Shown one piece after another: positions 5,965 through 64,000 of a stretch of DNA of 64,000 bases (within the stretch, counting starts at the first letter, position 1; every line of letters starts with the position of its first letter). The translations under genes and the position numbers were made by a program. The notes beneath the pieces were generated by a model. That model did not search any database. It saw only the letters and a program-made list of their open reading frames with translations, and was not told the origin of the DNA. The DNA is from Oopsacas minuta (Eukaryota; Animalia; Porifera). Location: assembly GCA_024704765.1 (NCBI GenBank), contig JAKMXF010000033.1, positions 124,001 to 188,000 on the forward strand, written 5' to 3'.

Positions 5965-6908
5965 TCAATTTTTATTCCTAGAAATAAACAAACAAACAAA
6001 TAAACAAACAAACAAATAAACAAATAAACAAATAAACAAACAAACGAATAAACAAACAAACAAACAAACAAATAAACAAACAAACAAACAAACAAACGAA
6101 TAAACAAACAAACAAACAAACAAATAAACAAACAAACAAACAAACAAATAAACAAACAAATAAACAAATAAACAAACAAATAAACAAACAAATAAACAAA
6201 TAAACAAATAAACAAACAAATAATTATCCGAATAACCTCACTTCACAACTTACAGTCTATATCTAATCAGCCTCCATCCTTGTATCAGTTGTGCTCCTTC
6301 ATTAGTAAAATGACATGAGAACAGTAGCCAATTCCTCGGCTGTACTTTAATAGCAAATCTCATGAACAGCATTGAATACACAGCTAGAGCTAAGTAACAC
6401 TTTGAAATTGACAATATATGTATTTACTTCAAATTCGTCTCCCTCCCTGAGGGGTGTAGCCAAATTTCCTCAGCTACTGATCGAGGAAATGGGAATTTTC
6501 AAGGTGTTAATAACCCCTCTCATTACAATATAAACTTACCTGCAGTCATTTTTCCAGATATCATTGTAGGATCTCTCTTCATATCCGCTATTGCTGCTAA
6601 CGGTAGTCCCCAATTAGCCACTGAGAATAGCAAAAGTAATCACAATTATTGTTATTTGTATAAGAACATACTTACCTGGTCCCCAAAAATGCTAAAAGAT
6701 AAACAATAATAAATCAATTAGTGTGTACGTAAATATACAAATAAACAAATCAACAACTGACCGTGCTGTCGAATCACAAACATAGAAGAAATAAACAAAC
6801 ATAAAGTACCAAAACAAATCAGAAAGTAACACCTCACCTCAGAAAATATTGTGCCCATTCTCTCGCCTTTGGATTCTTCACAAATCTATGAATAATTGCT
6901 GTTGTCAT
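5965..6908 (-). CDS. MPC1: Mitochondrial pyruvate carrier 1 (exons approx. 6908-6838, 6765-6762, 6691-6676, 6620-6540, 6389-6254, 5977-5965; last exon tentative)
   Basis: Spliced product ...[74 protein letters not shown]; missed by the ORF track because the exons are tiny. Confidence 0.93.
5983..6221. repeat. AAAC/AAAT microsatellite (about 240 bp), probably in the last MPC1 intron
   Basis: Directly visible tetranucleotide array; it generates the spurious FVCL-type ORFs. Confidence 0.95.
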
Positions 6909-7286
6909 GGTAATAATTCGTGTCGTTTGGAATTATAATTATCTATAGCGTAAGAATAATTGTTATGGTTGCGTTTATACAAAACATTCAATTCTAATGG
7001 ATTATCCCGTGGGTACATGTAGCTACCAATTGGCTCACGTCACGCAGTGAACGCTTCGATATTTAGCTTCTCCTAGGTGTTGAAAACTCTCCGATGCCTA
7101 CCTCAGTTTTTGGGGAGCTTGTGACACTAATTATAGCAGGATTGTGTTATCTGCTGAATATCAAAATGCCCGCCTACATCGAGTCTATAATTGTACAAAT
7201 ATTTTCCCAAACCGTTGCATAATGAAGTAACCATCACTGTCCCTTGAAATGTCTTTAATTTTTGTATGCTAGTAACTCTTCATGAG

Positions 7287-9421
7287 ATGGGTTGTACTTC
7301 CTCCAGTAGTTCAGCTCAAATACCTTCCAAACACCCCATAGAAGACACCCATCAGAGACAAAATCACCCTTCCACAAGGACTATAATACATGCTGGAGAG
7401 AATGTTGTTAAAATGTCCTTACCTGTACAGGAGGCAGTTATGGTAGTCATGTATCCATACTCTGTCCCATCGATTAATTTGAAGAAGGATGATCTAGTTA
7501 GACTAGGGGAGAAGGGAAGAGGAGATTGTTATTGGTGTGAAATACAGACCAATACAGGAGATAGTATACATGTCCCTGAACAAATACTGGCTAGTAGAGG
7601 ATCTCTTCCTGCTTGCGAGTAAGTTAATAAGTGCCCGATTTGATCCCCAAGGGGTCAATTTGTATACTCAAAAATATGTGAAAACATTATCATGTTTTGT
7701 AGATGGTATTACGAGTGTATCTCTAAACGAGAAGCTGAAAAGAAACTGATACAACCGAGAATCGAACCAGGGACCTTCCTTGTCCACAAGAAGCCTTACA
7801 ATGAAGATTACATATGTACAACTATGACTGAAGGAGGTACTAAGCAATATGTAATACGTAGCGACGAGAAAGGAGGATATTTCATTACTAGAAGGAGAGT
7901 ATTTGAATCAGTTCAGGAGTTGATAGATGTGTTTACGCTAGAAAAGGGAGAGGATATTCCATTTAGATTACAGAAACCCCTACAGCGTGTTCCTCCTATC
8001 CTGTACTCCTGTTATCAAGGGATTAATTATCCTCTTGAAATACAAACTGATAAGATTGAGATTGGGAATTGTATCGGAGAGAGTAATGTATGGGAAGGTA
8101 GATTCAATGGAAATATTGTAAGTTGTTTGTTTACTAGTTGTTATAGCATTTGTTTATTGATGTTTCACAGGTAATAGTTAGGAAGTTGAACTCAACTAAT
8201 TTTACTCAAGAAGAATTTACCAAATCCATGGTCCAATTTAGAAACACCTATCATAAGAATCTCCAGCTGTTAATTGGATTCTGCTGCCCTAAAAATGAAT
8301 TCCTGATGGTTACTGAGAACTTTCCTAGAGGTAATCTCAGAGATTATCTAAAGGAGCAGAGTGAAGTACTCATTGAGCCTGAACTCATAACTTATTGTAC
8401 TCAGGTAGATTTTATCACTGTGTTTGGTCTTGCTTCTAGATTACAAACTTGTTAACTACAGTGGAGTCTCCCAAACAGACACTCAAGAAGCGGACAACTG
8501 CCTATAATGAACAAAAGCGATGCGTCCAACGTGTCTATTATTCGGAGACTCTACTGTAAATCCAGGAAAATATTCATTGCAGTTTTTTGGTAAAAATAGT
8601 CAAAATTCATAAAATTTGAATGCAGGGGAAAGCAGTTAGAAGTGTTTATGAGTAATGTGATAATACAATATTGAATGTATTTCTATAGATAGCAAGTGGA
8701 ATGAATAATCTTGAGTTAGCTGGTATAACACACGGATTATTGTCTGCTTGTAATATTATGATTAGTAACGATGATATACTCAAAATATGTGACATAGGAG
8801 TATCTGAATTTGTTCATTCTAAAGATTATTATGTGAGGTGGACAGCTCCCGAGGTGTTACGAGATAGTTATAAGTGAGTTTATTAAGATATTATGAGGTG
8901 TTTTGATATTTTAACACCCTCCTATTCACTTTTCACTACAATTATATTCGATAGCGTCAGTCCTAAATCAGATGTTTGGAGTTTTGGTATCTTATTAACA
9001 GAGATTGTGACTCTTGGAGAGGAGCCTTACTCAACCTTAACAAATCCAGAAGTTAGTTATCTGTTTTATGCTCTCGTTATATCGAAGCTCAAGGAACCGC
9101 GATAATTACTTCGATATACCCGATGGAGTATATGTAACTGTTTTGGATCATATTTGTACAATTTCAAACTTTGATATATCGGTGTTAGATATAACGAGAG
9201 TTCACTTTCTATAGGTGAAGACACAGGTGTTAGATGGCTACCGTATGCCACGTCCTACTGATTGTCATGCTTACCTCTACGATATGATGAATGAATGCTG
9301 GAACAATAATCCTAGACGGAGACCTACTTTTGATAGTTTATCTTACCGGTTAGATGATTTTTATATCGCAGCTGAACACGAGACCAACCCTAGGCAAAGT
9401 TTGTATAGATATTTTAAATAA
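7287..9421 (+). CDS. Src-family pseudokinase (MGC N-terminus, degenerate SH3, SH2 and kinase domains)
   Basis: SH2-like WYY...EAEKKL...GTFLVH; kinase exons with [47 protein letters not shown]. Confidence 0.85.
8457..8558. mobile_element. Short TA-flanked MITE-like element in an intron
   Basis: Inverted ends TACAGTGGAGTCTC ... GAGACTCTACTGTA. Confidence 0.7.
9070..9208. mobile_element. TA-flanked Tc1/mariner-pogo-like MITE family; other copies at about 12908-12981, 15578-15735, 21002-21170, 25690-25830, 36868-37005, 50986-51052 and 54115-54189
   Basis: Shared core GTTATATCGAAGCTCAAGG(G/A)ACC..GATAATTACTTCGATAT and ends resembling TACAGTCAACTC...GAGTTGACTGTA. Confidence 0.85.
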
Positions 9422-44587: not shown

Positions 44588-47247
44588 ATGAACACGGAAG
44601 TAGCTAGATTAGCTAAACAGTTAGAAAAACTACAGAAAGATGACTTTGAGGTATATTTGTATTTGTATTTTTATTTGCATTGGTTGGTTATTAGAAGTAT
44701 CAATACATGTCCTTCTAACATATAATGTTTGTATCCATTAGGACCCAGAACGAGCACTAGACTTGCTCCATCAATTGAAAGAATGTCAGATTAGTATTAA
44801 CCTTCTCAATGTATGTATTTGTCTTATAAACTATTTTTCTAATACTCAACACGTTATTAATATCTATTTTTAGGATACTAGAGTTGGACTGATTGTGAAT
44901 ACTCTCCGAAAGAAAACTAGTAGTCCAGAGGTTTCAGCTTTAGGAAAGAAACTAATCAAAACTTGGAAGAAATTCCTTCCCGCGGGTAATTACCATTAGC
45001 TATAGATCTCTATGTAATTCCTTGATGCACATATTATATTTAGAAGAGCCGAAGAGACCCAAAACTGCATACAGGAATAGTCCTGTTTATGAGCAAGATG
45101 ATACACTTAAGAATAGTCCAGAGCCTCAACCTCTACCCATCGTATCTTCCAGTAACTACCAGTCTGTGTCTCGGCCTCATGTCTCTAAGAGAGAGTATCA
45201 TCCGGTATTAACTGGGAATGTTATTAGAGATAAAATCATTGAAATGATTGTGGATGCTTTCAAGAAGAATGTTCCTGCTGGTAAAGTCATTAGTTAATTA
45301 GATTAATAAATACTTGTTATCTCATTCCAAATACCAACGAAGTAACCATGGAAACTGGGGCATAACACGTCACAGAAGCACGTTAGGGGAGTTGGTGAAT
45401 GATTCATGGTATGTAGTATGCGATTATATGTTATGTTCCCCTTCCAAAGGTGCTAAAATATGAATAATCACCTTGGCTACTTTTGGAGGAATGTATTTAT
45501 TTTAGAGTTAATATACGATGCACAATTCTACAAATTGGCTACAGAAATCGAAGAAAATATCCTCACACATAGCTTAATTACTTTATTTAATTATCACAAT
45601 TTTCTTATTCACAAAAGTTGTTCATATACAGCTCGATTAAATTCTTAGTCTCTTCTCTGAGAGATAGAATTTTAACACCTTTTCCTCCTCTGTAAGATTT
45701 CCGTCTCCTTTTTGAATCTCTTGAATTTGTGATTTTAGACTCGATCGTATCTTTCTTGACTTTCTTATGAATTTTATGGAATGGGTCTGGGAGTGTGTCA
45801 GTTATTTCTGGAGCTATTTCTTTGCTCTTAGCAACAGCGTAATCATATAAGAATGCTCTCTCTTGTGGTGTTCTGAAACTCTGTAGGACATCGTAGGAGT
45901 AGTGGAGAGAATCATTAACCTGGAACTAACACATTATACTACTAGATTGCATATTTATATCAAATATTGTTATTTACTTACTTGTTTATCTATAGACTCG
46001 TCACCAGCTATATCTTTAATAACGTGTTTGTATTCAGTAATTCCTCTCATTTTCCTAAGAATATCATCTTCTAACTTGTTCGGTATAATTACTAGACCTC
46101 TCTCCCTCCCTCTGATCCCAAAATCTCTGATCTCCTCACGTGATACTCCTTCTTGTTTGTATTTACAAACACGTATATGTTGTTTGTTTGTATCCTTGAT
46201 ATAATGTTGAGGGTTAACAGGACATTGCATTGAATCATCAGTGCTAATATCTAATTCAATTAGTTTTGTCTTATATTCGCAATCTTCTAATCTCTGTCTC
46301 ATAATCTCCAGCTGTACGCTCCTCACTTCTATCTCTGCTTCTGATAGAGACATCTATACTATAGCTATAGCTAGTACTGGTTATAATAGCGGTCCCCAAG
46401 CTGCCCTTGGTGGTTTACGATCGACAGCAGGGGGGGGTAATTAAGGACAAAATAGATTGGGAACAGCTGGTTTATAGATTATCCCATATGAATAATTATG
46501 CAGCAATTGGCTATTATTGATTCTAAGTCACAATTCTTATAAAATGTACCCGGCATGTGTTATTCCTAAACTGGTCACATATATACAATGAGTTCAAAGA
46601 TACAGGGCTGAAGTATAAGAACAGATGTCGGAGTCGAATATCTAATCTGAAAGATCTCAAGAACCCTCTGCTCAGACAGAGAGTACTCTCGAGAGAAATA
46701 AACCCAGAAATGTTCGCACAAATGAGCGCAGAAGTAAGTTATCAAGAATTCTCGATTTTATCCGAATCCAACATCTTTTATTGTTCATAGGATATGGCAA
46801 GCGAACAGTTGAAAAAGAAAATAGAAGAATACAAGGAAGTAAATATAAATAATGCACAAATGGCGACAGGAGGAGGAACCAAAACAGATCTCTTCAAATG
46901 TGGAAAATGTAAAAGTAATGAATGTTCTTATTTTCAGTTACAAACTCGATCAGCTGATGAACCAATGACAACATATGTATGGTGCTGTTCATGTGGAAAT
47001 AGATGGAAGGTTTGTTACCCAATCGAATTACAGAGATAAGCTTACCTAGATATTTGTTTTCGCTCTACTGTTCACACCTTTAGTGATTAAGACACTAAAT
47101 TTGGCATGTGTAGTCGTCATGACATCTAGTTGTACACCTGACATTTGAAATATTTCTAATGTGTATATTTTCACACCTTTTGGTAAACTTAAGTCGGTAC
47201 AGACGGTGATTTGAGATTATAATTCTTTCATTTTGTAGTTCTGCTAA
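44588..47247 (+). CDS. TCEA1: Transcription elongation factor TFIIS, including a predicted AT-AC intron 45557-46578
   Basis: [33 protein letters not shown]...[11 protein letters not shown]...CGNRWKFC zinc ribbon with the DE motif. Confidence 0.95.
45557..46578 (+). other. U12-type (AT-AC) minor-spliceosome intron of TFIIS
   Basis: 5' end ATATCCTC, branch-like TTCCTAAAC at 46563-46571, 3' end TCAC; splicing gives in-frame IEE-N-IYNEF matching the TFIIS IEExIY motif; no suitable GT donor near the exon end. Confidence 0.85.
45605..46353 (-). CDS. SNRNP48: U11/U12 snRNP 48 kDa protein, 2 exons, nested antisense in the TFIIS U12 intron
   Basis: CHHC finger CPVNPQH...HIRVC followed by GVSREE; second exon [11 protein letters not shown] and [11 protein letters not shown], characteristic of 48K. 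Confidence 0.85.
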
Positions 47248-47949
47248 CAGACATATTTCCTCAAATCCTTACAACAGCTGTAGCCATCAAACAACAGCTA
47301 AACACACTTCTGCCTATTATTACTATATAGCTAAGCTTAAACATCAGTTTATCAGCTGAGTACTGTCTTTGTTGACTCAATTGCATTGCTAATTACTCTT
47401 ACAGCAAGTTTGTACCTGTAATTATATATTTTGAATTGTTCTCTTTGCTTATTATTTTAACACCTTCCTCGAATACCCTCAAATCTGATAGGCCGCTATT
47501 CTCAGAAATGATGAACATTTCGTTTAGGTAGAGTCCACAATTGATCCTCTCAGGTTTTAAAATACAATACATGACTCAACCCATCAGTTATACAGATTAT
47601 TCACATGTGATTATATCACATTAACTATCGATTACAAACATACATAAACCTTTGTACATTTGGTAGTCACAAGCTATTATTTCCTCTGAACAAACAGATT
47701 ACAGATCATTATTCCAGTATACTATAGCTTCCCTGTACACAAATCAATCGCTTAATTTGGAAAATAAAGCCATTTCCATAATACGTATCCTAGCAATAGC
47801 TATTAGACACTTTCAGTGTATCCTAAAATAGATCATGAATCATATTAACGTCATTCATCTCGTGTGTGCTTATACGGCTGTTATGTATATAAGGATTCTT
47901 TGAATTTATAAATGTATTTTCTATACATTGATTATTACTAGCAGTTATA

Positions 47950-56761: not shown

Positions 56762-57133
56762 TTTGAAAAGAACATTCTACCAATAGAAGGAATAGAAGGA
56801 AAAGACTTCGTAGACCCACATTTTAGTTCTGAAGAAATAAAATTAGTGAAAAGATTACCAAAAACTTTGCAAGATAGAGCTCTCAGATGTTTGAAAGAAC
56901 AAAAAATTATCAGTGAAAGTAGGAATAAAAGTGACAATAATTTAGAGACGAACAGCCAAACCAAACTTCCCTCAAAATCTGATAAACGTAAGAACGGTTT
57001 ATTTACAGTTTGGACAAGTGAAGCTGACAAAAATTCTTCTAAAAGCAAATCAAAAATCCGCAAACCAGATTTCAGTCCTCTGGGGACAATACAGCCACCT
57101 AAGACCTCAAAATCTAACCCTAGCAAGAAGTAA
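56762..57133 (+). CDS. Lys/Ser-rich terminal exon of an unidentified gene
   Basis: Acceptor TATTTAG at 56762 opens a roughly 120-codon frame; upstream exons not resolved. Confidence 0.35.
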   Translation, partial: FEKNILPIEGIEGKDFVDPHFSSEEIKLVKRLPKTLQDRALRCLKEQKIISESRNKSDNNLETNSQTKLPSKSDKRKNGLFTVWTSEADKNSSKSKSKIRKPDFSPLGTIQPPKTSKSNPSKK

Positions 57134-57269
57134 ATATACGTCAACATATATCTCAAGTGTGAAATAAATACAAACAAAACACAATAACAAACAAGCTGTA
57201 TGTAAATACTGCAACCTAATAATGCGAACTCTATTAATTAAATCTAAACTAAGAAACTATTTGAACTAT

Positions 57270-60200
57270 TTATATCTTGTCTATTCGTCAGCTGTTTTTC
57301 ACCTCGTAAGGTATTCTGAAAACATCAATTTTGAAATGTGAACTCAATTCTTTGACCTATCAACAGAAGAATGTGAATTTTGGTACCGTGGGGGTCCTAA
57401 AAGTGACCCTCTGTCTCTGTAAACTCACCACAACAAAACCGAAATGAAAGTGTGAGAGTAGTAACACAATAACATAAGCGTATAGCACACCAATTTCTAT
57501 CTGTGGCACAGCTACTGAGGTTATAAGGGATATTACGGCTAGCAAAACCAAACTGTTAAATATCCTGAATCTTACTCCAGACATCTGTGAGATTATCAGG
57601 TTACACTACATGGGACAGATGTCATTTGTTTGTTTGTGTTTGTTTGATTGTACATACCGTTACATTCGAGAATGCTATTCCTATAGCAGAACAGAAGCAC
57701 CTTATCTCTATCTGCATTACCTTATTAGGAGATACTACAGACCAGATAATAAACACTAGGATTAAACCAGTAAGTGGTATAAATGGAGAGATGGAATCTA
57801 TAAAGCTGTCACACTTGTTCTCCTTGTTCACATAACTCCTAATTAAATTATAGAAATATGAGAGGACCCGATAATCCCTCCTCTCCTGGGTTTCCCCAAC
57901 AACTCACACTATCACATTCCATAAACTGACCAACAGACTAATGGCAGTACCACCTACAAACAAACAAACAAACAAACATACAAAACACATAATGTTTATT
58001 ACCTGCCATACCACTGACGTATAACACAATCAGAGGAATACCAAATCCTTCCAAATACCTTCCAAGAACACTCCATACTTCCATACCAAATATTCCTGTT
58101 ACTAAGTAAGCAGCTGATATACCCTATAGATACAATTTATTAACAGGGGGCGATCCCCTGGAGAGGAGGGGGCAATTTATCTATAGGAACATATAGTAAA
58201 TAATTGGATTGGTAAACAGCATAAATAATATATGTAAATTAGTTAGTGAGTCAAGTCAAAGTAAATATGTAATACAGCACAATTGTCCTTGCAGTATAGC
58301 TCATCTTTCAGTAGAGATATGTCTAAGAATAGGAAATTATAGCTCCTGGTATTGAGGTCCAGTTTATGAGTTATCCTATCGGTGAGTACTAGAGGTTCCC
58401 CTTCATCAACTGGTACCAATTCACACCTATAAGAACTGAGACAATTGTCCCCTATGATCTCATCAAAGTATCCAGGTAGTCTGCTAACAGTCAGACTTAT
58501 AGAGCCTAATAGACCGGAATTAGCTGTGATTCTAACATTGTTATGCCAGATATAAAAGGGAGGACTCTCAATGGTAGAAACAGATCTTGTGAGAGTATTA
58601 ACATCCAGGATACTCCAGCTGTACCCTTCTAGTATACGTCCTGTTATTGAGTCATATTTCATTAGCTCTGGTTTAGTGAACAGGGCTTTGGTTAGAAGTT
58701 CATTTTTCTTCTCTAAACTTGATACTCTTCTTTTCAGCTCAGCTGTCTCTCTCTCTATATTCAGATAATGCTCATTCATGTTTCTATCTGGTAGAGTGTC
58801 CTGCTGTCGTGTAACCACTATTTCTTCTATCTGGGTTATTGCATTGGTGATTCGTGATGATTCACATTTGTTAGAGCATTTATTCATATGATCTTCTAAC
58901 TCATCTCTTTTCATAACTACTTCACAATTCGTACAAGATACTGTATGCGGACTACAGGTGAAGAGATGTTTTTCTAGATCTATAGCTTGTAGCTCTACCC
59001 CACAGATCTCACAGGACACCTGTCTCATTACACACACCTTCCCGTGTTGCTCCATAGACCTACGGCTAATCCCTAATTCACATTTATTAGGACATTTATA
59101 TAGAAGCTCTTTGCAACGTTGTAAATGAATTTCCCCTTCCGTCACGGTACCAGTCCAGCTGCATCCCCGAGAAGATAAGGGACATTTCATGACTAGGCGT
59201 GCCACTAGCTCGCGTATGTCTCTAACCGGTGTTGCTTTGTCCGGACCATAGGAACAAGGTTTGCAAGTTGTCATCCCCTGGAAGGTGCAAGCGTCCCTTT
59301 TCACACCTTGACATAGGGTACAGATTACCAGAGCCTCTTCTATGATCGTGAAAGCCCGCATGAATAACTCCCTGTGGTATCCGCCATATCTTGTGACGTC
59401 ATTTTGTGATACTGTAGTATAGAGCAGTGGAGATAGTTTATCTGGAACAGCCATATATACTTGTTTACTTAGAGGTTAGTTTGTATACAGTTAGTGTTTG
59501 TATTGTATTATTATGTTATTGTGCAGTAATAACTATTCTATTCGCACAATTAAAGTTTACACCTGGAAAAGGTATGGCAATAAACTGGTTGAATGGAATG
59601 TGTTTGTTAATTATTAATTACCTGATGTACGAAATCAAATATCCAAGGTAGGAACAAAACTCCTGTATTGTACTTCTCCCAGTGAGATAAGTAGAATCCG
59701 ATTATTCCCATTATAACTGTGAAGAATATGATACCCTCTGTAAGTCCTATTCCCTGGCCTAGTCCTAGCCCTGAGGCAGCAGTTAAAGGGATTATGAATG
59801 CTACTATACTGTCCAAACCATGATCAAATAATTCTCCTATACACATTATTTATTGTAACAGCCATACAATAATTTCTATACAATGTAGCCTCCTTAAACT
59901 GGGTCGGAAAATGCTACCCAGTTTGTAGAGGCACACTGTACTTATTTTCACACCTAAAGGTGTGGAAGTCTTGGTCCTCCTAGCCTGCTTACCGTCCATA
60001 CCGTCCAGATTGTAACCAGTGAAATGAGCGACCGCAGAGTAGGCCCACACCCATGAGGGAATACCAGCTGTGTTCTTGAAGTCATAATCATACCAACCAA
60101 TCAGAATATAGGTAGACAGGACTAATAGGAATCCTACTACGGTCATTAGATTGGGAGCTACCCATCTTGGCGTTAACTACAGGAATGGGTAAAAGGAATT

Positions 60201-62345
60201 TACAATTGTTATGTGTATTTGAGTGCAGTACAAAGAATTAGTTATTAATAATTTGTAACAACAACAACAACAACAACAACAAATGGCTACAGAAACAGAG
60301 GACAAAGAATTCGTACCCACATTCGAAATAAAATCCCATCCAACAGACATACGAGCATATCAAAATCCATTCCCAGATTATATGTCTGCAATGTCTAACG
60401 AAACTTCTCTCATACACATAGCACAAGAAATTGTTATAAGCACAGATTTTATAAACAAAATTAAGTATTTTATAGCAGAACAGCTGGAGGTTATTGGAGA
60501 TAATTATTTGGATAAACTATCATATCAAGATGATAAGACCGTTTATACAGGGAGTTGTGGGCTGGCTTTTTTGTATATTAAGCTAGGTAATGGAATGTAT
60601 AAAAGAGATTCAAAGGCAGCTAAGTCTTTTCTGGAAATGGCAGGGGAAATTCTTGAAACGGTAGGTTCATATTTTAACGCCTTTTACAGATAATGTATAT
60701 TCACCTATTAGCAATTTGTTATTTTGTATTGTAAATAGAACGCATAATAGCAAGTTCACGTGTTGCAAGGAAATTCATATAAATACGATTTGTTAACAAG
60801 CGAACTACTGTCATTTGTAGGCAAGAGATGAAGTATATAAAGCATATCCAGCGTTTCTAATGGGGGACGGTGGTCCATGGACTCTATCGATACTACACGC
60901 ACAAGCTACGGGAGATAAGGACAGTATAGCTAAGTACACGGCAGAACTAGTGCATTTACATCACCATGTAGTTTGTAGTAAGAAAAATAATGAAGATGAG
61001 TTATTGTATGGAAGTGCTGGGTATTTGTATTGTCTGTTGTTAGTAAGGAAACTTGTACCTGAAGCCAATATAAATGACGAATTAGTTAAGAAAGTCAGTG
61101 ATGTGTTGGTAGAACATGGGATCAAATTGGCTCAATCTTTAGGACCAATTCCTCCCCTGATGTACTCATTCGCAGCAAAACAGTATATAGGAGCTGCCCA
61201 CGGATTAGCTGGTGTAGTGTACATACTGCTATGTAGTGCTGAGCTGATGGGAAGCAATGAAAACATGGATAATATAATATCATGTCTAGAGTATCTGCAG
61301 GGGGTAAAGTATGCTTCAGGTAGGTTAAAGACAACCCCAGGGCAAAGGGCAGTGATGGCGTCTGTCAATAAACTCATTATGCTAGACATGAATCAGTTCC
61401 TTGCATGCCAATGACTCTATGATATCTCTAGGGAACTTCCCCACTCAGTTCGGAGATACAGATGACATGAGGTTACACTGGTGTCACGGAGCTCCTGGCA
61501 TAGCAGTACTATTCTGTAAAGCATATAGTGTTACTCATAATATAAAATATCTCAAGACTGCTGTACAAGCAGCTAGACTTGTATGGGACAGAGGTCTGAT
61601 CAAGAAAGGAATTTCTCTATGTCATGGTGTAGCAGGGAATGCATACACATTCCTACAGTTATTTAAGGTAACTATGGTTGGATACACGCAGTAAATACGA
61701 GAAATATATTGTTTGTTTATTACTTTATTATCAACTAAGGTTACACAAGATGCAGAGTATCTCTACAATGCTCTCAAGTTCGCTGAATGGTGTATAGATG
61801 CTACTAAGGCTAGAGGGAGACCAGATAGACCGTTCACACTGTTTGAGGGACTAGCAGGTGCTATATACTTCCTTAACGACCTACTGGACATCAAGAATGC
61901 AGCATTCCCCGGATACGAGTTGTAATATATTATTATTGACAAAATATATACGTTTAGTATATGAATATCGAGTGTATCATTTCTATACAATATTACAAAT
62001 ATATTTAAGGTATTGGGATGATTTTCAAAGGACACATCCATAGATACGCATTTGGCTTTAAGTTATGTCTAGTTAAAATCCATAAAACAAATAAATTTAA
62101 TACTCACCTCCACCATTTTGTTCCAACAAGGATTGACTACATACACTGAATAAGGACTTGTATCTCTGCAACTATACTATAATGTATTAATATAAATTGA
62201 GTACCTAGGAGTGTTTATTCGCCCCCTGGGGGTACATAATTGCCCTGTCAACAACAACAACAACAACAACAACAACAACGCTTACCTTATAGTTGTCAAA
62301 TCCTTTGAGTTGTCTATCATTTAGATACGGTACCCCTGTTATCAT
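57270..62345 (-). CDS. SELENOI: Ethanolamine phosphotransferase EPT1/SELENOI-like, about 9 exons, hosting two nested genes; first stop TGA at 57288-57290
   Basis: LKGFDNYKYSCRDTSPYS, WVAPNL, DGMDGKQARRT..STPLGELFDHGLD CDP-alcohol phosphotransferase motif, SHWEKYNTGVLFLPW, VKELSSHF. Confidence 0.92.
58243..59454 (-). CDS. TRAF-like protein, intronless, nested on the same strand in EPT1 intron 58124-59621
   Basis: RING-like CTLC...CKPC, CPLSSRGCSWTG, several TRAF zinc fingers, coiled coil, MATH-like YSW..SPPFY..PGYFD. Confidence 0.87.
   Translation of the reverse strand: MAVPDKLSPLLYTTVSQNDVTRYGGYHRELFMRAFTIIEEALVICTLCQGVKRDACTFQGMTTCKPCSYGPDKATPVRDIRELVARLVMKCPLSSRGCSWTGTVTEGEIHLQRCKELLYKCPNKCELGISRRSMEQHGKVCVMRQVSCEICGVELQAIDLEKHLFTCSPHTVSCTNCEVVMKRDELEDHMNKCSNKCESSRITNAITQIEEIVVTRQQDTLPDRNMNEHYLNIERETAELKRRVSSLEKKNELLTKALFTKPELMKYDSITGRILEGYSWSILDVNTLTRSVSTIESPPFYIWHNNVRITANSGLLGSISLTVSRLPGYFDEIIGDNCLSSYRCELVPVDEGEPLVLTDRITHKLDLNTRSYNFLFLDISLLKDELYCKDNCAVLHIYFDLTH
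60283..61925 (+). CDS. LanC-like protein (LANCL1/2 family), about 4 exons, nested antisense in EPT1 intron 60177-62107
   Basis: RAYQNPFPDY, VYTGSCG, ELLYGSAGY, GAAHGLAG, WCHGAPG, LCHGVAGN, PDRPFTLFEGLAG. Confidence 0.93.
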
Positions 62346-62392
62346 ATTCATTCTGTTATAATCTAATTATATAAATATACACAAACAAGTGA

Positions 62393-64000
62393 ATGGAGTT
62401 TTATACTACAAGGAAGCCCCCCACAAAACGGCGGAATATTCAACATCATCTAGTGGATGGTCTCCAAAAGGATGAAGCATATCCTTTGTCAATTAATATG
62501 TACAGAGACCCCCCTACTGAGGATATTATGTTGGAAGAGTTTAAAGAACTAGCGCTTAAGCGTAGAAATTGTTAGTTATCAATTCTGGAAATATTAAAAT
62601 ATTGTTTGCTATGTTTTATTAATATTACTTTTTTTGTAGTGCTGAAAGAGATAGAATACTTCAACAGTAAGTTTCAAAAATGGGGGGAAGATTGGAAAAT
62701 GAGAATGAGAGACATTTCTAAATCAAATAAACTACACGTAAGTATGTTTGTAAACAAATAACAAACAATAAATACGTTCTGAATATTGTTGATGTTATAG
62801 GTAGACAGGATAGATGAAGATAGTCAGAAGATAAGAAGGAGAGACTATATATCACATTTTCTACTCAGATTAGCTTATTCTCAAAGGTAACTCAGATAAC
62901 TCCAGTCTATGGGTCCTCTCACTTTACTTCTTAAAATTTTAGTGAGCATCTGAGGAGATGGATGGTTTTACATGAAACTGATTTATTCAGGTAAACTAAC
63001 CGCCTTTATAATCTCTAAATAACAACAGGCTTATTGTATTTAACGCGTAGATACAGATTTGAGAATGCTACAGAAGTGGAAAGATTCGAATTTATGTCGA
63101 AGGACCCAGATTTAAAGTCTTACTCTCAAGTTAGTAATAATAGAATAGAGTGTCGGTTAATTGGGTCACTTTGTCCCGAGGGCATTTTGGCGACACAATA
63201 AGCAGGGACGGATGAATTATTAATTACAGACATATTTTAGATAGAAGATTCAGAATTTCAGTTAGTTGAAGAATCTCTTTTAGAGAGTTATATTAAATTC
63301 CTTAGGGACAAAATCAATAAGGAAAATGTAAAGTTTTACAAAGTAAGTTATTTGTACGGAAATATATTTATGAGCTAAGCCAGGGCCCGTAGAGATCTGT
63401 GCTGTGTGTATTCTGTTTAGATACCATTCACTCTAGTACCGAATCTAGTGTCTAACAGATCTATTTTTATACAAAACGTGAGTTGGATTTGTATTGGAAA
63501 TATGTCCCACTGTATTTGGAATTCTTGTACTTGTGTAGGGTTACGCTTATTTGCCTTCCTGGGATCTACAGACAATAGTCACAAGTGTATTCCGAGCTAA
63601 ACTCTCTCTAGCATTAACAGTAGGTTAATATTATCTAAAAAATTATTGCTATATGAAACGTGTTACGTTGCTATATTTAGAATACTAGTAGGAAATTAGA
63701 AAGAGCAAGAGATGATGAGAGAATATGGAAATTCTTAACTCAATTAGAGTGAGTTCTATAATGAGACTAAACAGAGGTCTGGGAACTTGTACTTCTCATG
63801 AGGTTATCTTACATCTCTTTATAGTACGTATTATGAGGGACCTGAATACAGAGGAACTTCTAAAAAAAATAATGAGAAGATTAGTGTTGGAGATATTGAA
63901 GATGTGAGTATAGTTACGAATATGTTACAAAGGAATTCATGGTTTCATATAAGGAGAGAGGAGATAAATCACCCCATGTAGCCCTTGCTAGTATGTTTAT
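62393..64000 (+). CDS. PRIM2: DNA primase large subunit, truncated by the window end
   Basis: YRDPPTEDIMLEEFKELALKR, RREDYISHFLLRLAYSQ..LRRW..HETDLFRYRF, FYKIPF, GYAYL. Confidence 0.9.

Follow-up and report, generated by a model that had tools for sequence, protein, structure and literature searches.

SNRNP48 nested antisense in a U12-type AT-AC intron of the TFIIS gene of the glass sponge Oopsacas minuta

The gene for the U11/U12-48K protein (SNRNP48) of Oopsacas minuta lies entirely within, and antisense to, a U12-type AT-AC intron of the TFIIS/TCEA gene. The locus was analysed in a window of 64,000 nucleotides (contig JAKMXF010000033.1 of assembly GCA_024704765.1, positions 124,001 to 188,000), and all positions below are those of the window. 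The 48K protein is the component of the U11 snRNP that contacts the U12-type 5' splice site, and the product of the nested gene is thus specific to the machinery for introns of its host's class. We consider this nesting to be probably a frozen accident, in which an ancient U12 intron came to hold SNRNP48 as an independent antisense unit. The features of the locus are collected in Table 1.

Table 1. Features of the TFIIS/SNRNP48 locus of O. minuta, in window coordinates.
Feature	Position	Strand	Description
TFIIS/TCEA gene	44588..47247	+	8 coding exons, 304 aa; exon model, Pfam and RNA joints
TFIIS coding exons 1-4	44588-44650, 44742-44810, 44874-44985, 45044-45280	+	
TFIIS coding exons 5-8	45506-45556, 46579-46733, 46791-47009, 47239-47247	+	
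TFIIS exon 5	45506..45556	+	last letters ...GAAGAAA, directly before the U12 5' splice site
TFIIS exon 6	46579..46733	+	exon model, RNA joints
U12-type AT-AC intron of TFIIS	45557..46578	+	1022 nt, phase 1, inside the TFIIS_M domain; RNA joint
U12 5' splice site ATATCCTC	45557..45564	+	consensus match; same 8-mer across seven sponge lineages
U12 branch-point box TTCCTAAAC	46563..46571	+	7 nt upstream of the terminal AC (46577-46578)
Nested SNRNP48 (U11/U12-48K) ortholog	45605..46353	-	228 aa, 2 exons; identical to NCBI LOD99_13942
SNRNP48 exon 1	46353-45982	-	ATG at 46353
SNRNP48 exon 2	45919-45605	-	stop TAA at 45607-45605 included
GT-AG intron of SNRNP48	45920..45981	-	62 nt; RNA joint
CHHC zinc-finger coding region	46165..46224	-	C-x5-H-x8-H-x3-C spacing
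Predicted AATAAA poly(A) signal of SNRNP48	45582..45587	-	from sequence only; 25 nt from the U12 5' splice site

The U12-type intron of TFIIS

Translation of the eight joined exons gives a TFIIS product of 304 aa with the C-terminus WKFC, in which Pfam recognises Med26, TFIIS_M (6e-33) and Zn_ribbon_TFIIS (1e-17). Spliced joints in RNA contigs were found for six of the seven TFIIS introns. The five joints other than that of intron 45557-46578, from the same RNA run, are all GT..AG, with no other class observed among them. The O. minuta TFIIS protein itself was not among the database matches.

The contigs used here come from a single run that behaves as RNA and are unstranded. In them, a joint from 45556 to 46579 skips 1022 nucleotides with AT..AC ends at a depth of 4777. 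A 4-nt ATAT repeat at 45556/46579 permits five placements of the cut, and only the AT..AC placement fits a known splice class. The intron splits codon N179 in phase 1 (IEE/N/IYNEF). Its 5' splice site ATATCCTC matches the /RTATCCTT consensus at 7 of 8 positions, the branch box TTCCTAAAC differs from TCCTTRAC by one mismatch with the branch A at about -9, and the 3' end reads TGGTCAC. A branch A at about -9 is at the short end of the known U12 range, and U12-type introns do not require a long polypyrimidine tract.

The 8-mer RTATCCTY occurs in the window at chance frequency (9 occurrences against 13 expected), thus the motif alone proves nothing. The weight for a U12 intron comes from the RNA junction, the branch box, the restoration of the reading frame and the conservation across species. 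The RNA junction, the two consensus boxes and the orthologous U12 introns of coral and fish mark intron 45557-46578 as a U12-type AT-AC intron, with exactly the coordinates given in a preliminary description of this DNA. Its splicing probably depends on the minor spliceosome. No minor snRNA genes were found in the window (an Rfam search of its whole length returned no matches at all), and a repeat search over 45250-47300 gave nothing relevant.

Structure and identity of the nested gene

SNRNP48 occupies 749 of the 1022 nt of the host intron (73%); 48 nt separate its stop from the U12 5' splice site, and 225 nt separate its ATG from the 3' splice site. The preliminary description, which placed the whole gene antisense within the intron and had it fill about three quarters of it, was correct in this geometry and exact in its coordinates; a single detail had to be changed, as the acceptor used in RNA lies 6 nt downstream of the first in-frame AG and yields a protein of 228 aa. 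This joint, 45919/45982 (recorded as 45917->45980, cut +2), is CT..AC on the + strand and hence GT..AG on the - strand, at a depth of 229 in the unstranded contigs. The presence of an antisense spliced joint in RNA contigs establishes that SNRNP48 is transcribed in antisense. As in the U12/U2 twintrons of Drosophila prospero and SRSF10, a U2-type intron is physically located within a U12-type one; however, the introns of a twintron compete on one transcript, whereas the inner GT-AG intron in the sponge is part of another gene, transcribed from the opposite strand.

The nested protein is named "CHHC U11-48K-type domain-containing protein" at NCBI (LOD99_13942), and its UniRef label is likewise. 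A Pfam search with the whole protein and with its separate exons gave no relevant match, including to zf-U11-48K (PF05253). In an alignment of the CHHC finger, O. minuta has one residue fewer between the two histidines (x8) than its relatives and the SNRNP48 of Glandiceps (x9), and this short loop accounts for the Pfam miss. Among the relatives, one protein (P0005, 23.1 bits) exceeds the Pfam U11-48K cutoff of 21.1 and two others fall below it (P0003, 20.6; P0002, 18.6). The Pfam miss and the deleted residue would both fit a different CHHC-finger protein (GTSF1- or TRMT13-like) or a decaying copy rather than a working U11-48K, a reading that we regard as very improbable in view of the searches that follow.

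SNRNP48 proteins have conserved regions beyond the finger, a central ERxxLYDY and a C-terminal RDxKRRRxSYR...LYM. A word-indexed homolog search returned only the O. minuta protein itself, and an exhaustive HMMER search was needed to retrieve relatives. A profile built from sponge sequences only matched human SNRNP48 (8r7n_F) with an E-value of 1.1e-6, positions 45-203 of the profile aligning with residues 51-252 and covering both the finger and the C-terminal RDxKRRRxSY / LYM region. The same profile also matched GTSF1 (E 7e-4), a point in favour of another CHHC-finger protein, but this match is confined to the finger. With phmmer, the annotated SNRNP48 of Glandiceps was matched over residues 43-223 (E 1.5e-4). 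It was the sole significant full-length match outside the sponge clade, the one other non-sponge match being a spurious repeat protein. No second 48K candidate was found in the sequence library searched. The open reading frame is intact in 7/7 lineages, and the gene is spliced and expressed, which argues against another CHHC-finger protein or a decaying copy. The nested antisense gene is thus a genuine, divergent SNRNP48 ortholog that is transcribed and spliced, and its earlier tentative assignment holds.

Conservation of the nesting and age of the intron

In six related genomes besides that of O. minuta, SNRNP48 likewise lies antisense within this AT-AC intron, and this conservation is new here. 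No published description of SNRNP48 nested in TFIIS was found in the literature on TCEA1 minor introns, SNRNP48 or sponge U11-48K, and the genome paper of O. minuta is silent on both U12 introns and nested genes. The 48K proteins of the six relatives are 37-63% identical to that of O. minuta. The 8-mer of the U12 5' splice site is the same in 7/7 lineages, and the branch box of the relatives, (T/C)TCCT(A/G)A(A/G)C, likewise lies exactly 7 nt before the AC. All 48K introns examined in the sponge relatives are GT-AG. In a TFIIS tree, the seven nested lineages form one clade with support 100/100.

The distance from the end of 48K to the U12 5' splice site ranges over 15-599 nt; measured from the stop it is 15-62 nt in four lineages and about 500-600 nt in three, in which the longer spacing consists of tolerated repeat-like insertions. 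In the one region that was aligned, from the 48K start codon to the 3' splice site of the U12 intron, the only conserved non-coding sequence is that of the splice signals. The flanking RCC1 and PDZ genes are as syntenic as the nested pair, hence the conservation of the nesting does not rise above the background.

The TCEA gene of the coral Desmophyllum has a U12-type intron at the same codon and in the same phase 1, GTATCCTTT...TTCCTTGAC (11 nt, ending in AG), and so does TCEA1 of the pufferfish Takifugu, ATATCCTTT...CTCCTTGAC (11 nt, ending in AC). The TFIIS U12 intron is therefore ancient. The intron is absent at the corresponding position of TFIIS in the demosponge Halichondria. Human TCEA3 has been named as a minor-intron gene (10.1101/2021.12.09.471104), a likeness at the level of the gene family. 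The sponge gene thus resembles other TCEA genes in having a U12-type intron, but the non-sponge introns examined hold no gene: no 48K-like sequence was found in the U12 introns of Desmophyllum TCEA or fugu TCEA1. The hemichordate Glandiceps has its SNRNP48 outside TFIIS. A possible retrogene origin of the sponge gene was weighed by setting its intron position against the Glandiceps exon boundaries; the boundaries lie at about aa 118 and about aa 126, in a poorly aligned region.

Probable chance nesting and possible feedback

The preliminary description had raised the possibility of a feedback circuit between 48K expression and minor splicing, and the present data neither support nor refute it. 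USSE-mediated autoregulation of SNRNP48 and RNPC3 is said to have been described by Verbeeren and colleagues in 2010. In the USSE, the 48K transcript carries a tandem pair of U12 5' splice-site motifs that activates an upstream U2-type 3' splice site (PMC8329584, PMC5473595). A comparable circuit in the sponge would again involve SNRNP48 and would sense minor-spliceosome activity through a U12-type 5' splice site at the 48K locus; unlike in the USSE, the only U12 5' splice site of the O. minuta locus is on the opposite strand and is the genuine donor of TFIIS. No USSE-like tandem U12 5' splice sites are present on the 48K strand in O. minuta or any relative. RTATCCT is absent from this strand in O. 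minuta, L001/2 and L005, and single, non-homologous U12-type motifs occur on it in the relatives L003 and L004. In these two, a single ATATCCT inside the 48K introns was considered as a mark of a U12-type 48K intron and rejected, every 48K intron being GT-AG. An internal GTATCCTT at 46190 on the + strand, in the finger-coding region, was rejected as a decoy or USSE as it is not conserved in the relatives.

A functional sensor, in which the efficiency of host U12 splicing feeds back on 48K output, appears unlikely. In its forward arm, slow minor splicing would let unspliced TFIIS pre-mRNA persist, fully antisense to the 48K mRNA, and would thereby alter the processing, stability or transcription of the latter; in a reverse arm, the 48K 3' UTR or convergent transcription would mask the TFIIS U12 5' splice site. 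Such a sensor would be in line with the retention of the nesting in seven lineages across deep divergence, with the U11-dependent negative feedback on SNRNP48 in other animals (PMC8329584, PMC5473595) and with the missing canonical USSE, which leaves room for a different control. In the four lineages with only 15-62 nt between the 48K stop and the U12 5' splice site, moreover, the 48K 3' UTR must complement the splice site or TFIIS exon 5. The RNA contigs span the entire host intron and continue past its 3' splice site with about 6% of the depth of the spliced form, and the neighbouring GT-AG intron 6 of TFIIS has zero coverage in the same contigs. This coverage is compatible with a retention of the U12 intron that yields antisense RNA, but retention is inseparable from 48K transcription because the contigs are unstranded. 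The sensor is also at odds with the insertions tolerated in three lineages between 48K and the 5' splice site, the lack of a conserved non-coding element in the aligned upstream region, the equal synteny of the neighbouring genes and the absence of the nesting outside the clade in the hemichordate, coral and fish examined. Finally, the simplest antisense model gives positive, not homeostatic, feedback. It is doubtful that glass sponges have replaced the usual USSE feedback on SNRNP48 by a positional one, in which the dwell time of the host intron would report minor-spliceosome activity and set 48K output. The routes of such a homeostat would be antisense RNA pairing or convergent-transcription effects, with the 48K 3' end abutting the U12 5' splice site. 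If true, it would be a self-referential control built from gene arrangement alone.

Generic co-regulation of host and guest, in which the open chromatin of a highly expressed host or transcriptional interference would maintain the nesting with no U12-specific logic, also has a low probability. The depth of TFIIS exons exceeds that of the 48K region by a factor of 10-50, but this is unstranded contig depth, a poor measure of expression. Both genes are housekeeping genes of the nuclear RNA machinery, and nested genes appear to be frequent in this genome; on the other side, there is no promoter conservation, and the present data are the same as those that a neutral frozen accident would give.

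A frozen accident is the most likely reading. In its favour are the equal synteny of the flanking RCC1 and PDZ genes, the missing USSE, the variable spacing, the lack of a conserved non-coding block upstream of the 48K ATG, and the absence of the nesting from Glandiceps, coral and fugu. The TFIIS U12-type intron was inherited from early animals and is probably removed by the minor spliceosome, and SNRNP48 would have come to lie antisense inside it in the ancestor of the glass-sponge clade. There it would act as an independent transcription unit with one ordinary GT-AG intron, a promoter probably located in the ~225 nt that separate its ATG from the branch site and 3' splice site of TFIIS, and a putative poly(A) signal at a distance of ~25 nt from the U12 donor site. 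The protein itself would join the U11 snRNP and aid the recognition of U12 5' splice sites genome-wide, including that of the host intron. The nesting probably arose by chance in a compact genome; other nested genes lie in the same window, and such genes appear to be common in the O. minuta genome. We propose that it was retained because no rearrangement could part host and guest without disrupting the host gene, which is essential. Apart from the generic interference between host and nested genes, no dedicated feedback between 48K and the host intron would be needed, and the two are probably uncoupled. Against an accident stands, besides the points given above for a sensor, the thematically striking pairing of guest and host: the probability that a gene specific to the minor spliceosome ends up in a U12 intron by chance in one lineage is, by a rough estimate, of the order of 0.1-1%. 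The locus resembles other intron-hosted nested genes of animals, in which a complete antisense gene in a host intron is stable over long evolutionary times, but differs from them in its host intron, which is of the rare U12 type, and in its guest, whose product is specific to the machinery for removing introns of this type.

If the arrangement is an accident, it serves as a useful warning that compact genomes can produce suggestive coincidences; if functional, it would represent a new mode of minor-spliceosome autoregulation and a rare regulation encoded purely by nesting. Gene predictors may fail at AT-AC introns that hold nested genes. The TFIIS/TCEA minor intron, traced to sponges at the same codon, is one of the deeply conserved U12 introns, and the locus offers a clean, conserved case of a spliceosome-specific gene housed in the intron type that its product helps to remove. 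The identification in Hexactinellida of a divergent SNRNP48 that Pfam misses implies that glass sponges keep the minor spliceosome.

The TFIIS gene and its AT-AC intron

The window is from the glass sponge Oopsacas minuta. Its TFIIS gene lies on the + strand and comprises eight exons, which encode a 304-residue protein with Med26, TFIIS_M and Zn-ribbon domains and a canonical WKFC end. Exons 5 and 6 are separated by a 1,022-nt intron that starts with ATATCCTC, interrupts codon N179 in phase 1 and ends in AC, 7 nt beyond the TTCCTAAAC box. The window has about as many copies of the RTATCCTY 8-mer as chance predicts (9 against 13 expected). The U12-type identity put forward in the preliminary description is upheld jointly by an RNA junction, the two boxes in correct geometry, frame restoration and conservation.

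The junction was found, as anticipated, in contigs of the public RNA-like run X4, from the same sample as the genomic DNA-like runs X1 and X2 (flat depth, contigs continuous across introns). X4 contains the 45556->46579 joint ("skips 1022, AT..AC") at a depth of 4777, and five more TFIIS introns appear there as GT..AG joints. Because of a 4-nt ATAT repeat, the 45556->46579 cut can be placed in five ways, of which AT..AC alone fits a known splice class.

A TCEA intron at the identical codon and phase in the coral Desmophyllum pertusum reads GTATCCTTT...TTCCTTGAC, then 11 nt to the terminal AG inclusive; the intron at this position in Takifugu rubripes TCEA1 reads ATATCCTTT...CTCCTTGAC, then 11 nt to the terminal AC inclusive. 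Human TCEA3 is named as a minor-intron gene (preprint 10.1101/2021.12.09.471104). The TFIIS-family gene of the demosponge Halichondria panicea has no intron there. Sequence comparison with the coral and Takifugu introns, and the TCEA3 listing, thus indicate that the host intron is a TFIIS-family U12 intron of ancient metazoan origin; that TCEA genes carry it is not new in itself.

The best database match to O. minuta TFIIS is just 46% identical, and the sponge's own protein is missing among the matches. The deposited annotation of 44588-47247 probably mis-models the gene; the AT-AC intron and the gene nested in it may be the cause.

Segments of TFIIS introns 4 (45327-45472) and 7 (47050-47218) reach 30-100 times the local baseline in the DNA runs (up to ~15,000 vs ~150), and variant contigs are numerous. 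The segments are plentiful also in the organism B run, one record of which joins 47218 to 45328, and they look like a high-copy interspersed repeat family. A 508-nt DNA contig from run X5 (different organism label, 2024) is ~95% identical to TFIIS exons 6-7 (46555-47024), with branch box and AC terminus unchanged, and probably stems from either a closely related organism or a population that has diverged. Elsewhere in the window, the - strand carries a pair of ATATCCTC motifs with a spacing of 77 nt (7880 and 7957), the upstream one followed after 38 nt by CTCCTGAAC; the pair could mark a U12-like intron of very small size or a duplication of exon ends.

Features of the nested locus and of a second interleaved region of the window
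Feature	Position	Strand	Remark
TFIIS host intron	45557-46578	+	U12-type, AT-AC
Branch box TTCCTAAAC	46563-46571	+	
48K gene	ATG 46353 to TAA 45607-45605	-	two exons, wholly within host intron
CHHC finger of 48K	46165-46224	-	
AATAAA of 48K	45587-45582	-	predicted
TRAF-type zinc-finger ORF	58243-59454	-	
CDP-alcohol phosphatidyltransferase exon	59850-60146	-	
LANCL-like ORFs	60860-61694	+	

The antisense gene for the U11/U12-48K protein

The nested gene fills 73% of the host intron and 48 nt separate its stop from the U12 5′ splice site, in agreement with the geometry first described. Its antisense expression, also predicted then, is evident from the X4 joint 45919/45982 (GT..AG on the - strand, depth 229), and thus the gene is transcribed and spliced. 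This joint moves the acceptor 6 nt downstream from the initial candidate and yields a 228-residue protein as in the NCBI annotation, identical to LOD99_13942.

A Pfam search with this protein gave no match. Pfam PF05253 misses the O. minuta finger because it has one residue fewer between the histidines, 8 versus 9 in all relatives and in SNRNP48 of the hemichordate Glandiceps talaboti; the relatives reach 18.6-23.1 bits, on both sides of the 21.1 cutoff. Searched exhaustively with phmmer, 1.84 billion representatives yielded eight exon-sized fragments from ENA assemblies. The sole significant full-length match outside the sponge clade was the Glandiceps U11/U12 snRNP 48 kDa-like protein (E = 1.5e-4, residues 43-223). 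A 1177-aa repeat protein (E = 9.9e-6) carries bacterial surface-protein domains and looks spurious. The guest and its relatives align over the CHHC finger and share ERxxLYDY, DPF, RDxKRRRxSYR and LYM motifs. A sponge-only profile matches human SNRNP48 (PDB 8r7n chain F, E = 1.1e-6) over the finger and on through the C-terminal region; its match to GTSF1 is confined to the finger. We therefore accept the proposed identity, on sequence grounds, as a divergent SNRNP48 ortholog.

The single 48K intron of L001, a contig from a related sponge, is ~930 nt long (6378-7303), enlarged by a tandem array of ~85-nt units; that of O. minuta has 62 nt.

Conservation of the nesting

Contigs encoding the phmmer fragments were retrieved and their loci inspected. 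The nesting was confirmed and extends to six further lineages (L001/L002; L003; L004; L005; L010; L011-L014), in which TFIIS residue 178/179 and the next exon flank a 48K-like gene in antisense orientation. All six host introns read ATATCCTC...(T/C)TCCT(A/G)A(A/G)C-N7 with a terminal AC. Identity to O. minuta is 37-63% for 48K and 67-82% for TFIIS (aligned parts). In a TFIIS tree with demosponge, coral, fish, hemichordate, annelid and mollusc outgroups, all outside the O. minuta group, L001, L003, L004 and L005 cluster with O. minuta at 100/100.

The neighbours of Glandiceps SNRNP48 are unrelated, and nothing 48K-like lies inside the coral and fugu U12 introns or the Halichondria locus. Among these loci, nesting is absent outside the O. 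minuta clade.

A (TTG)n microsatellite adjoins the branch-point box in five of the seven lineages (L001/L002, L004, L005, L010, L011) and is absent there from O. minuta and L003. On the 48K strand it reads (CAA)n and falls in the upstream or leader region of that gene, and in L005 it occupies most of the ~370 nt upstream of the ATG. Its retention at one site over such divergence is unusual.

Coupling or frozen accident

The preliminary description proposed a feedback between 48K expression and host-intron splicing. In the compact lineages, 9-25 nt separate the predicted 48K poly(A) signal from the U12 5′ splice site, so the 3′ UTR must overlap that site or TFIIS exon 5 antisense, which leaves room for coupling. 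X4 contigs also cover the host intron end to end (depth ~310-750), and an unspliced contig (46464-46606) spans the U12 3′ splice site at depth 313, ~6% of the spliced joint, versus zero coverage among X4 contigs for the adjacent GT-AG intron 6. A retained U12 intron or a long transcript of 48K could each account for this signal, and the two are inseparable because Logan contigs are unstranded.

The lack of the canonical SNRNP48 autoregulatory element, the USSE (tandem U12 5′ splice-site motifs on the 48K transcript), can be counted on either side: the O. minuta 48K strand has no U12 5′ splice-site motif, the relatives' 48K genes have no tandem pair, and 48K introns are GT-AG in all lineages. 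Against coupling, the branch box and splice site are the only conserved elements that the aligned lineages share from the 48K ATG to the U12 3′ splice site. The distance from stop to U12 5′ splice site is 48, 15, 16 and 62 nt in four lineages and 497-599 nt in three others, through inserted repeat-like sequence with a recurring CTCCGCTTAAT motif. Moreover, synteny in these loci also takes in the neighbouring RCC1-like and PDZ genes, so conservation of the nesting does not exceed the background. Finally, nested genes appear frequent in the O. minuta genome; in the window, TRAF-finger and LANCL-like genes interleaved with CDP-alcohol phosphatidyltransferase exons (57000-62600) are consistent with further cases. 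The proposed circuit thus gained no positive evidence, and we consider dedicated coupling improbable.

In L003, L004 and L010, ...CTCCGCTTAAT[A/C]GGG[T/A]CAC... recurs in the extra host-intron sequence and in other non-coding parts, the 48K intron included, which points to a small family of mobile elements in these sponges.

As a rough, uncomputed inference, with nested genes taken as a few percent of all genes, U12 introns as 0.1-0.5% of introns and minor-spliceosome-specific genes as about ten in number, chance would pair such a gene with a U12 intron in one lineage at an order of 0.1-1%; one such coincidence across many animal lineages and stretches of DNA is not unexpected. A search of the literature found no description of SNRNP48 inside a TFIIS U12 intron, and the arrangement appears undescribed; its conservation across lineages is new here. 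Once formed, the nested pair is hard to part without breaking the host gene, and it is probably a neutral, frozen accident in which host and guest interfere with each other in a generic way at most.
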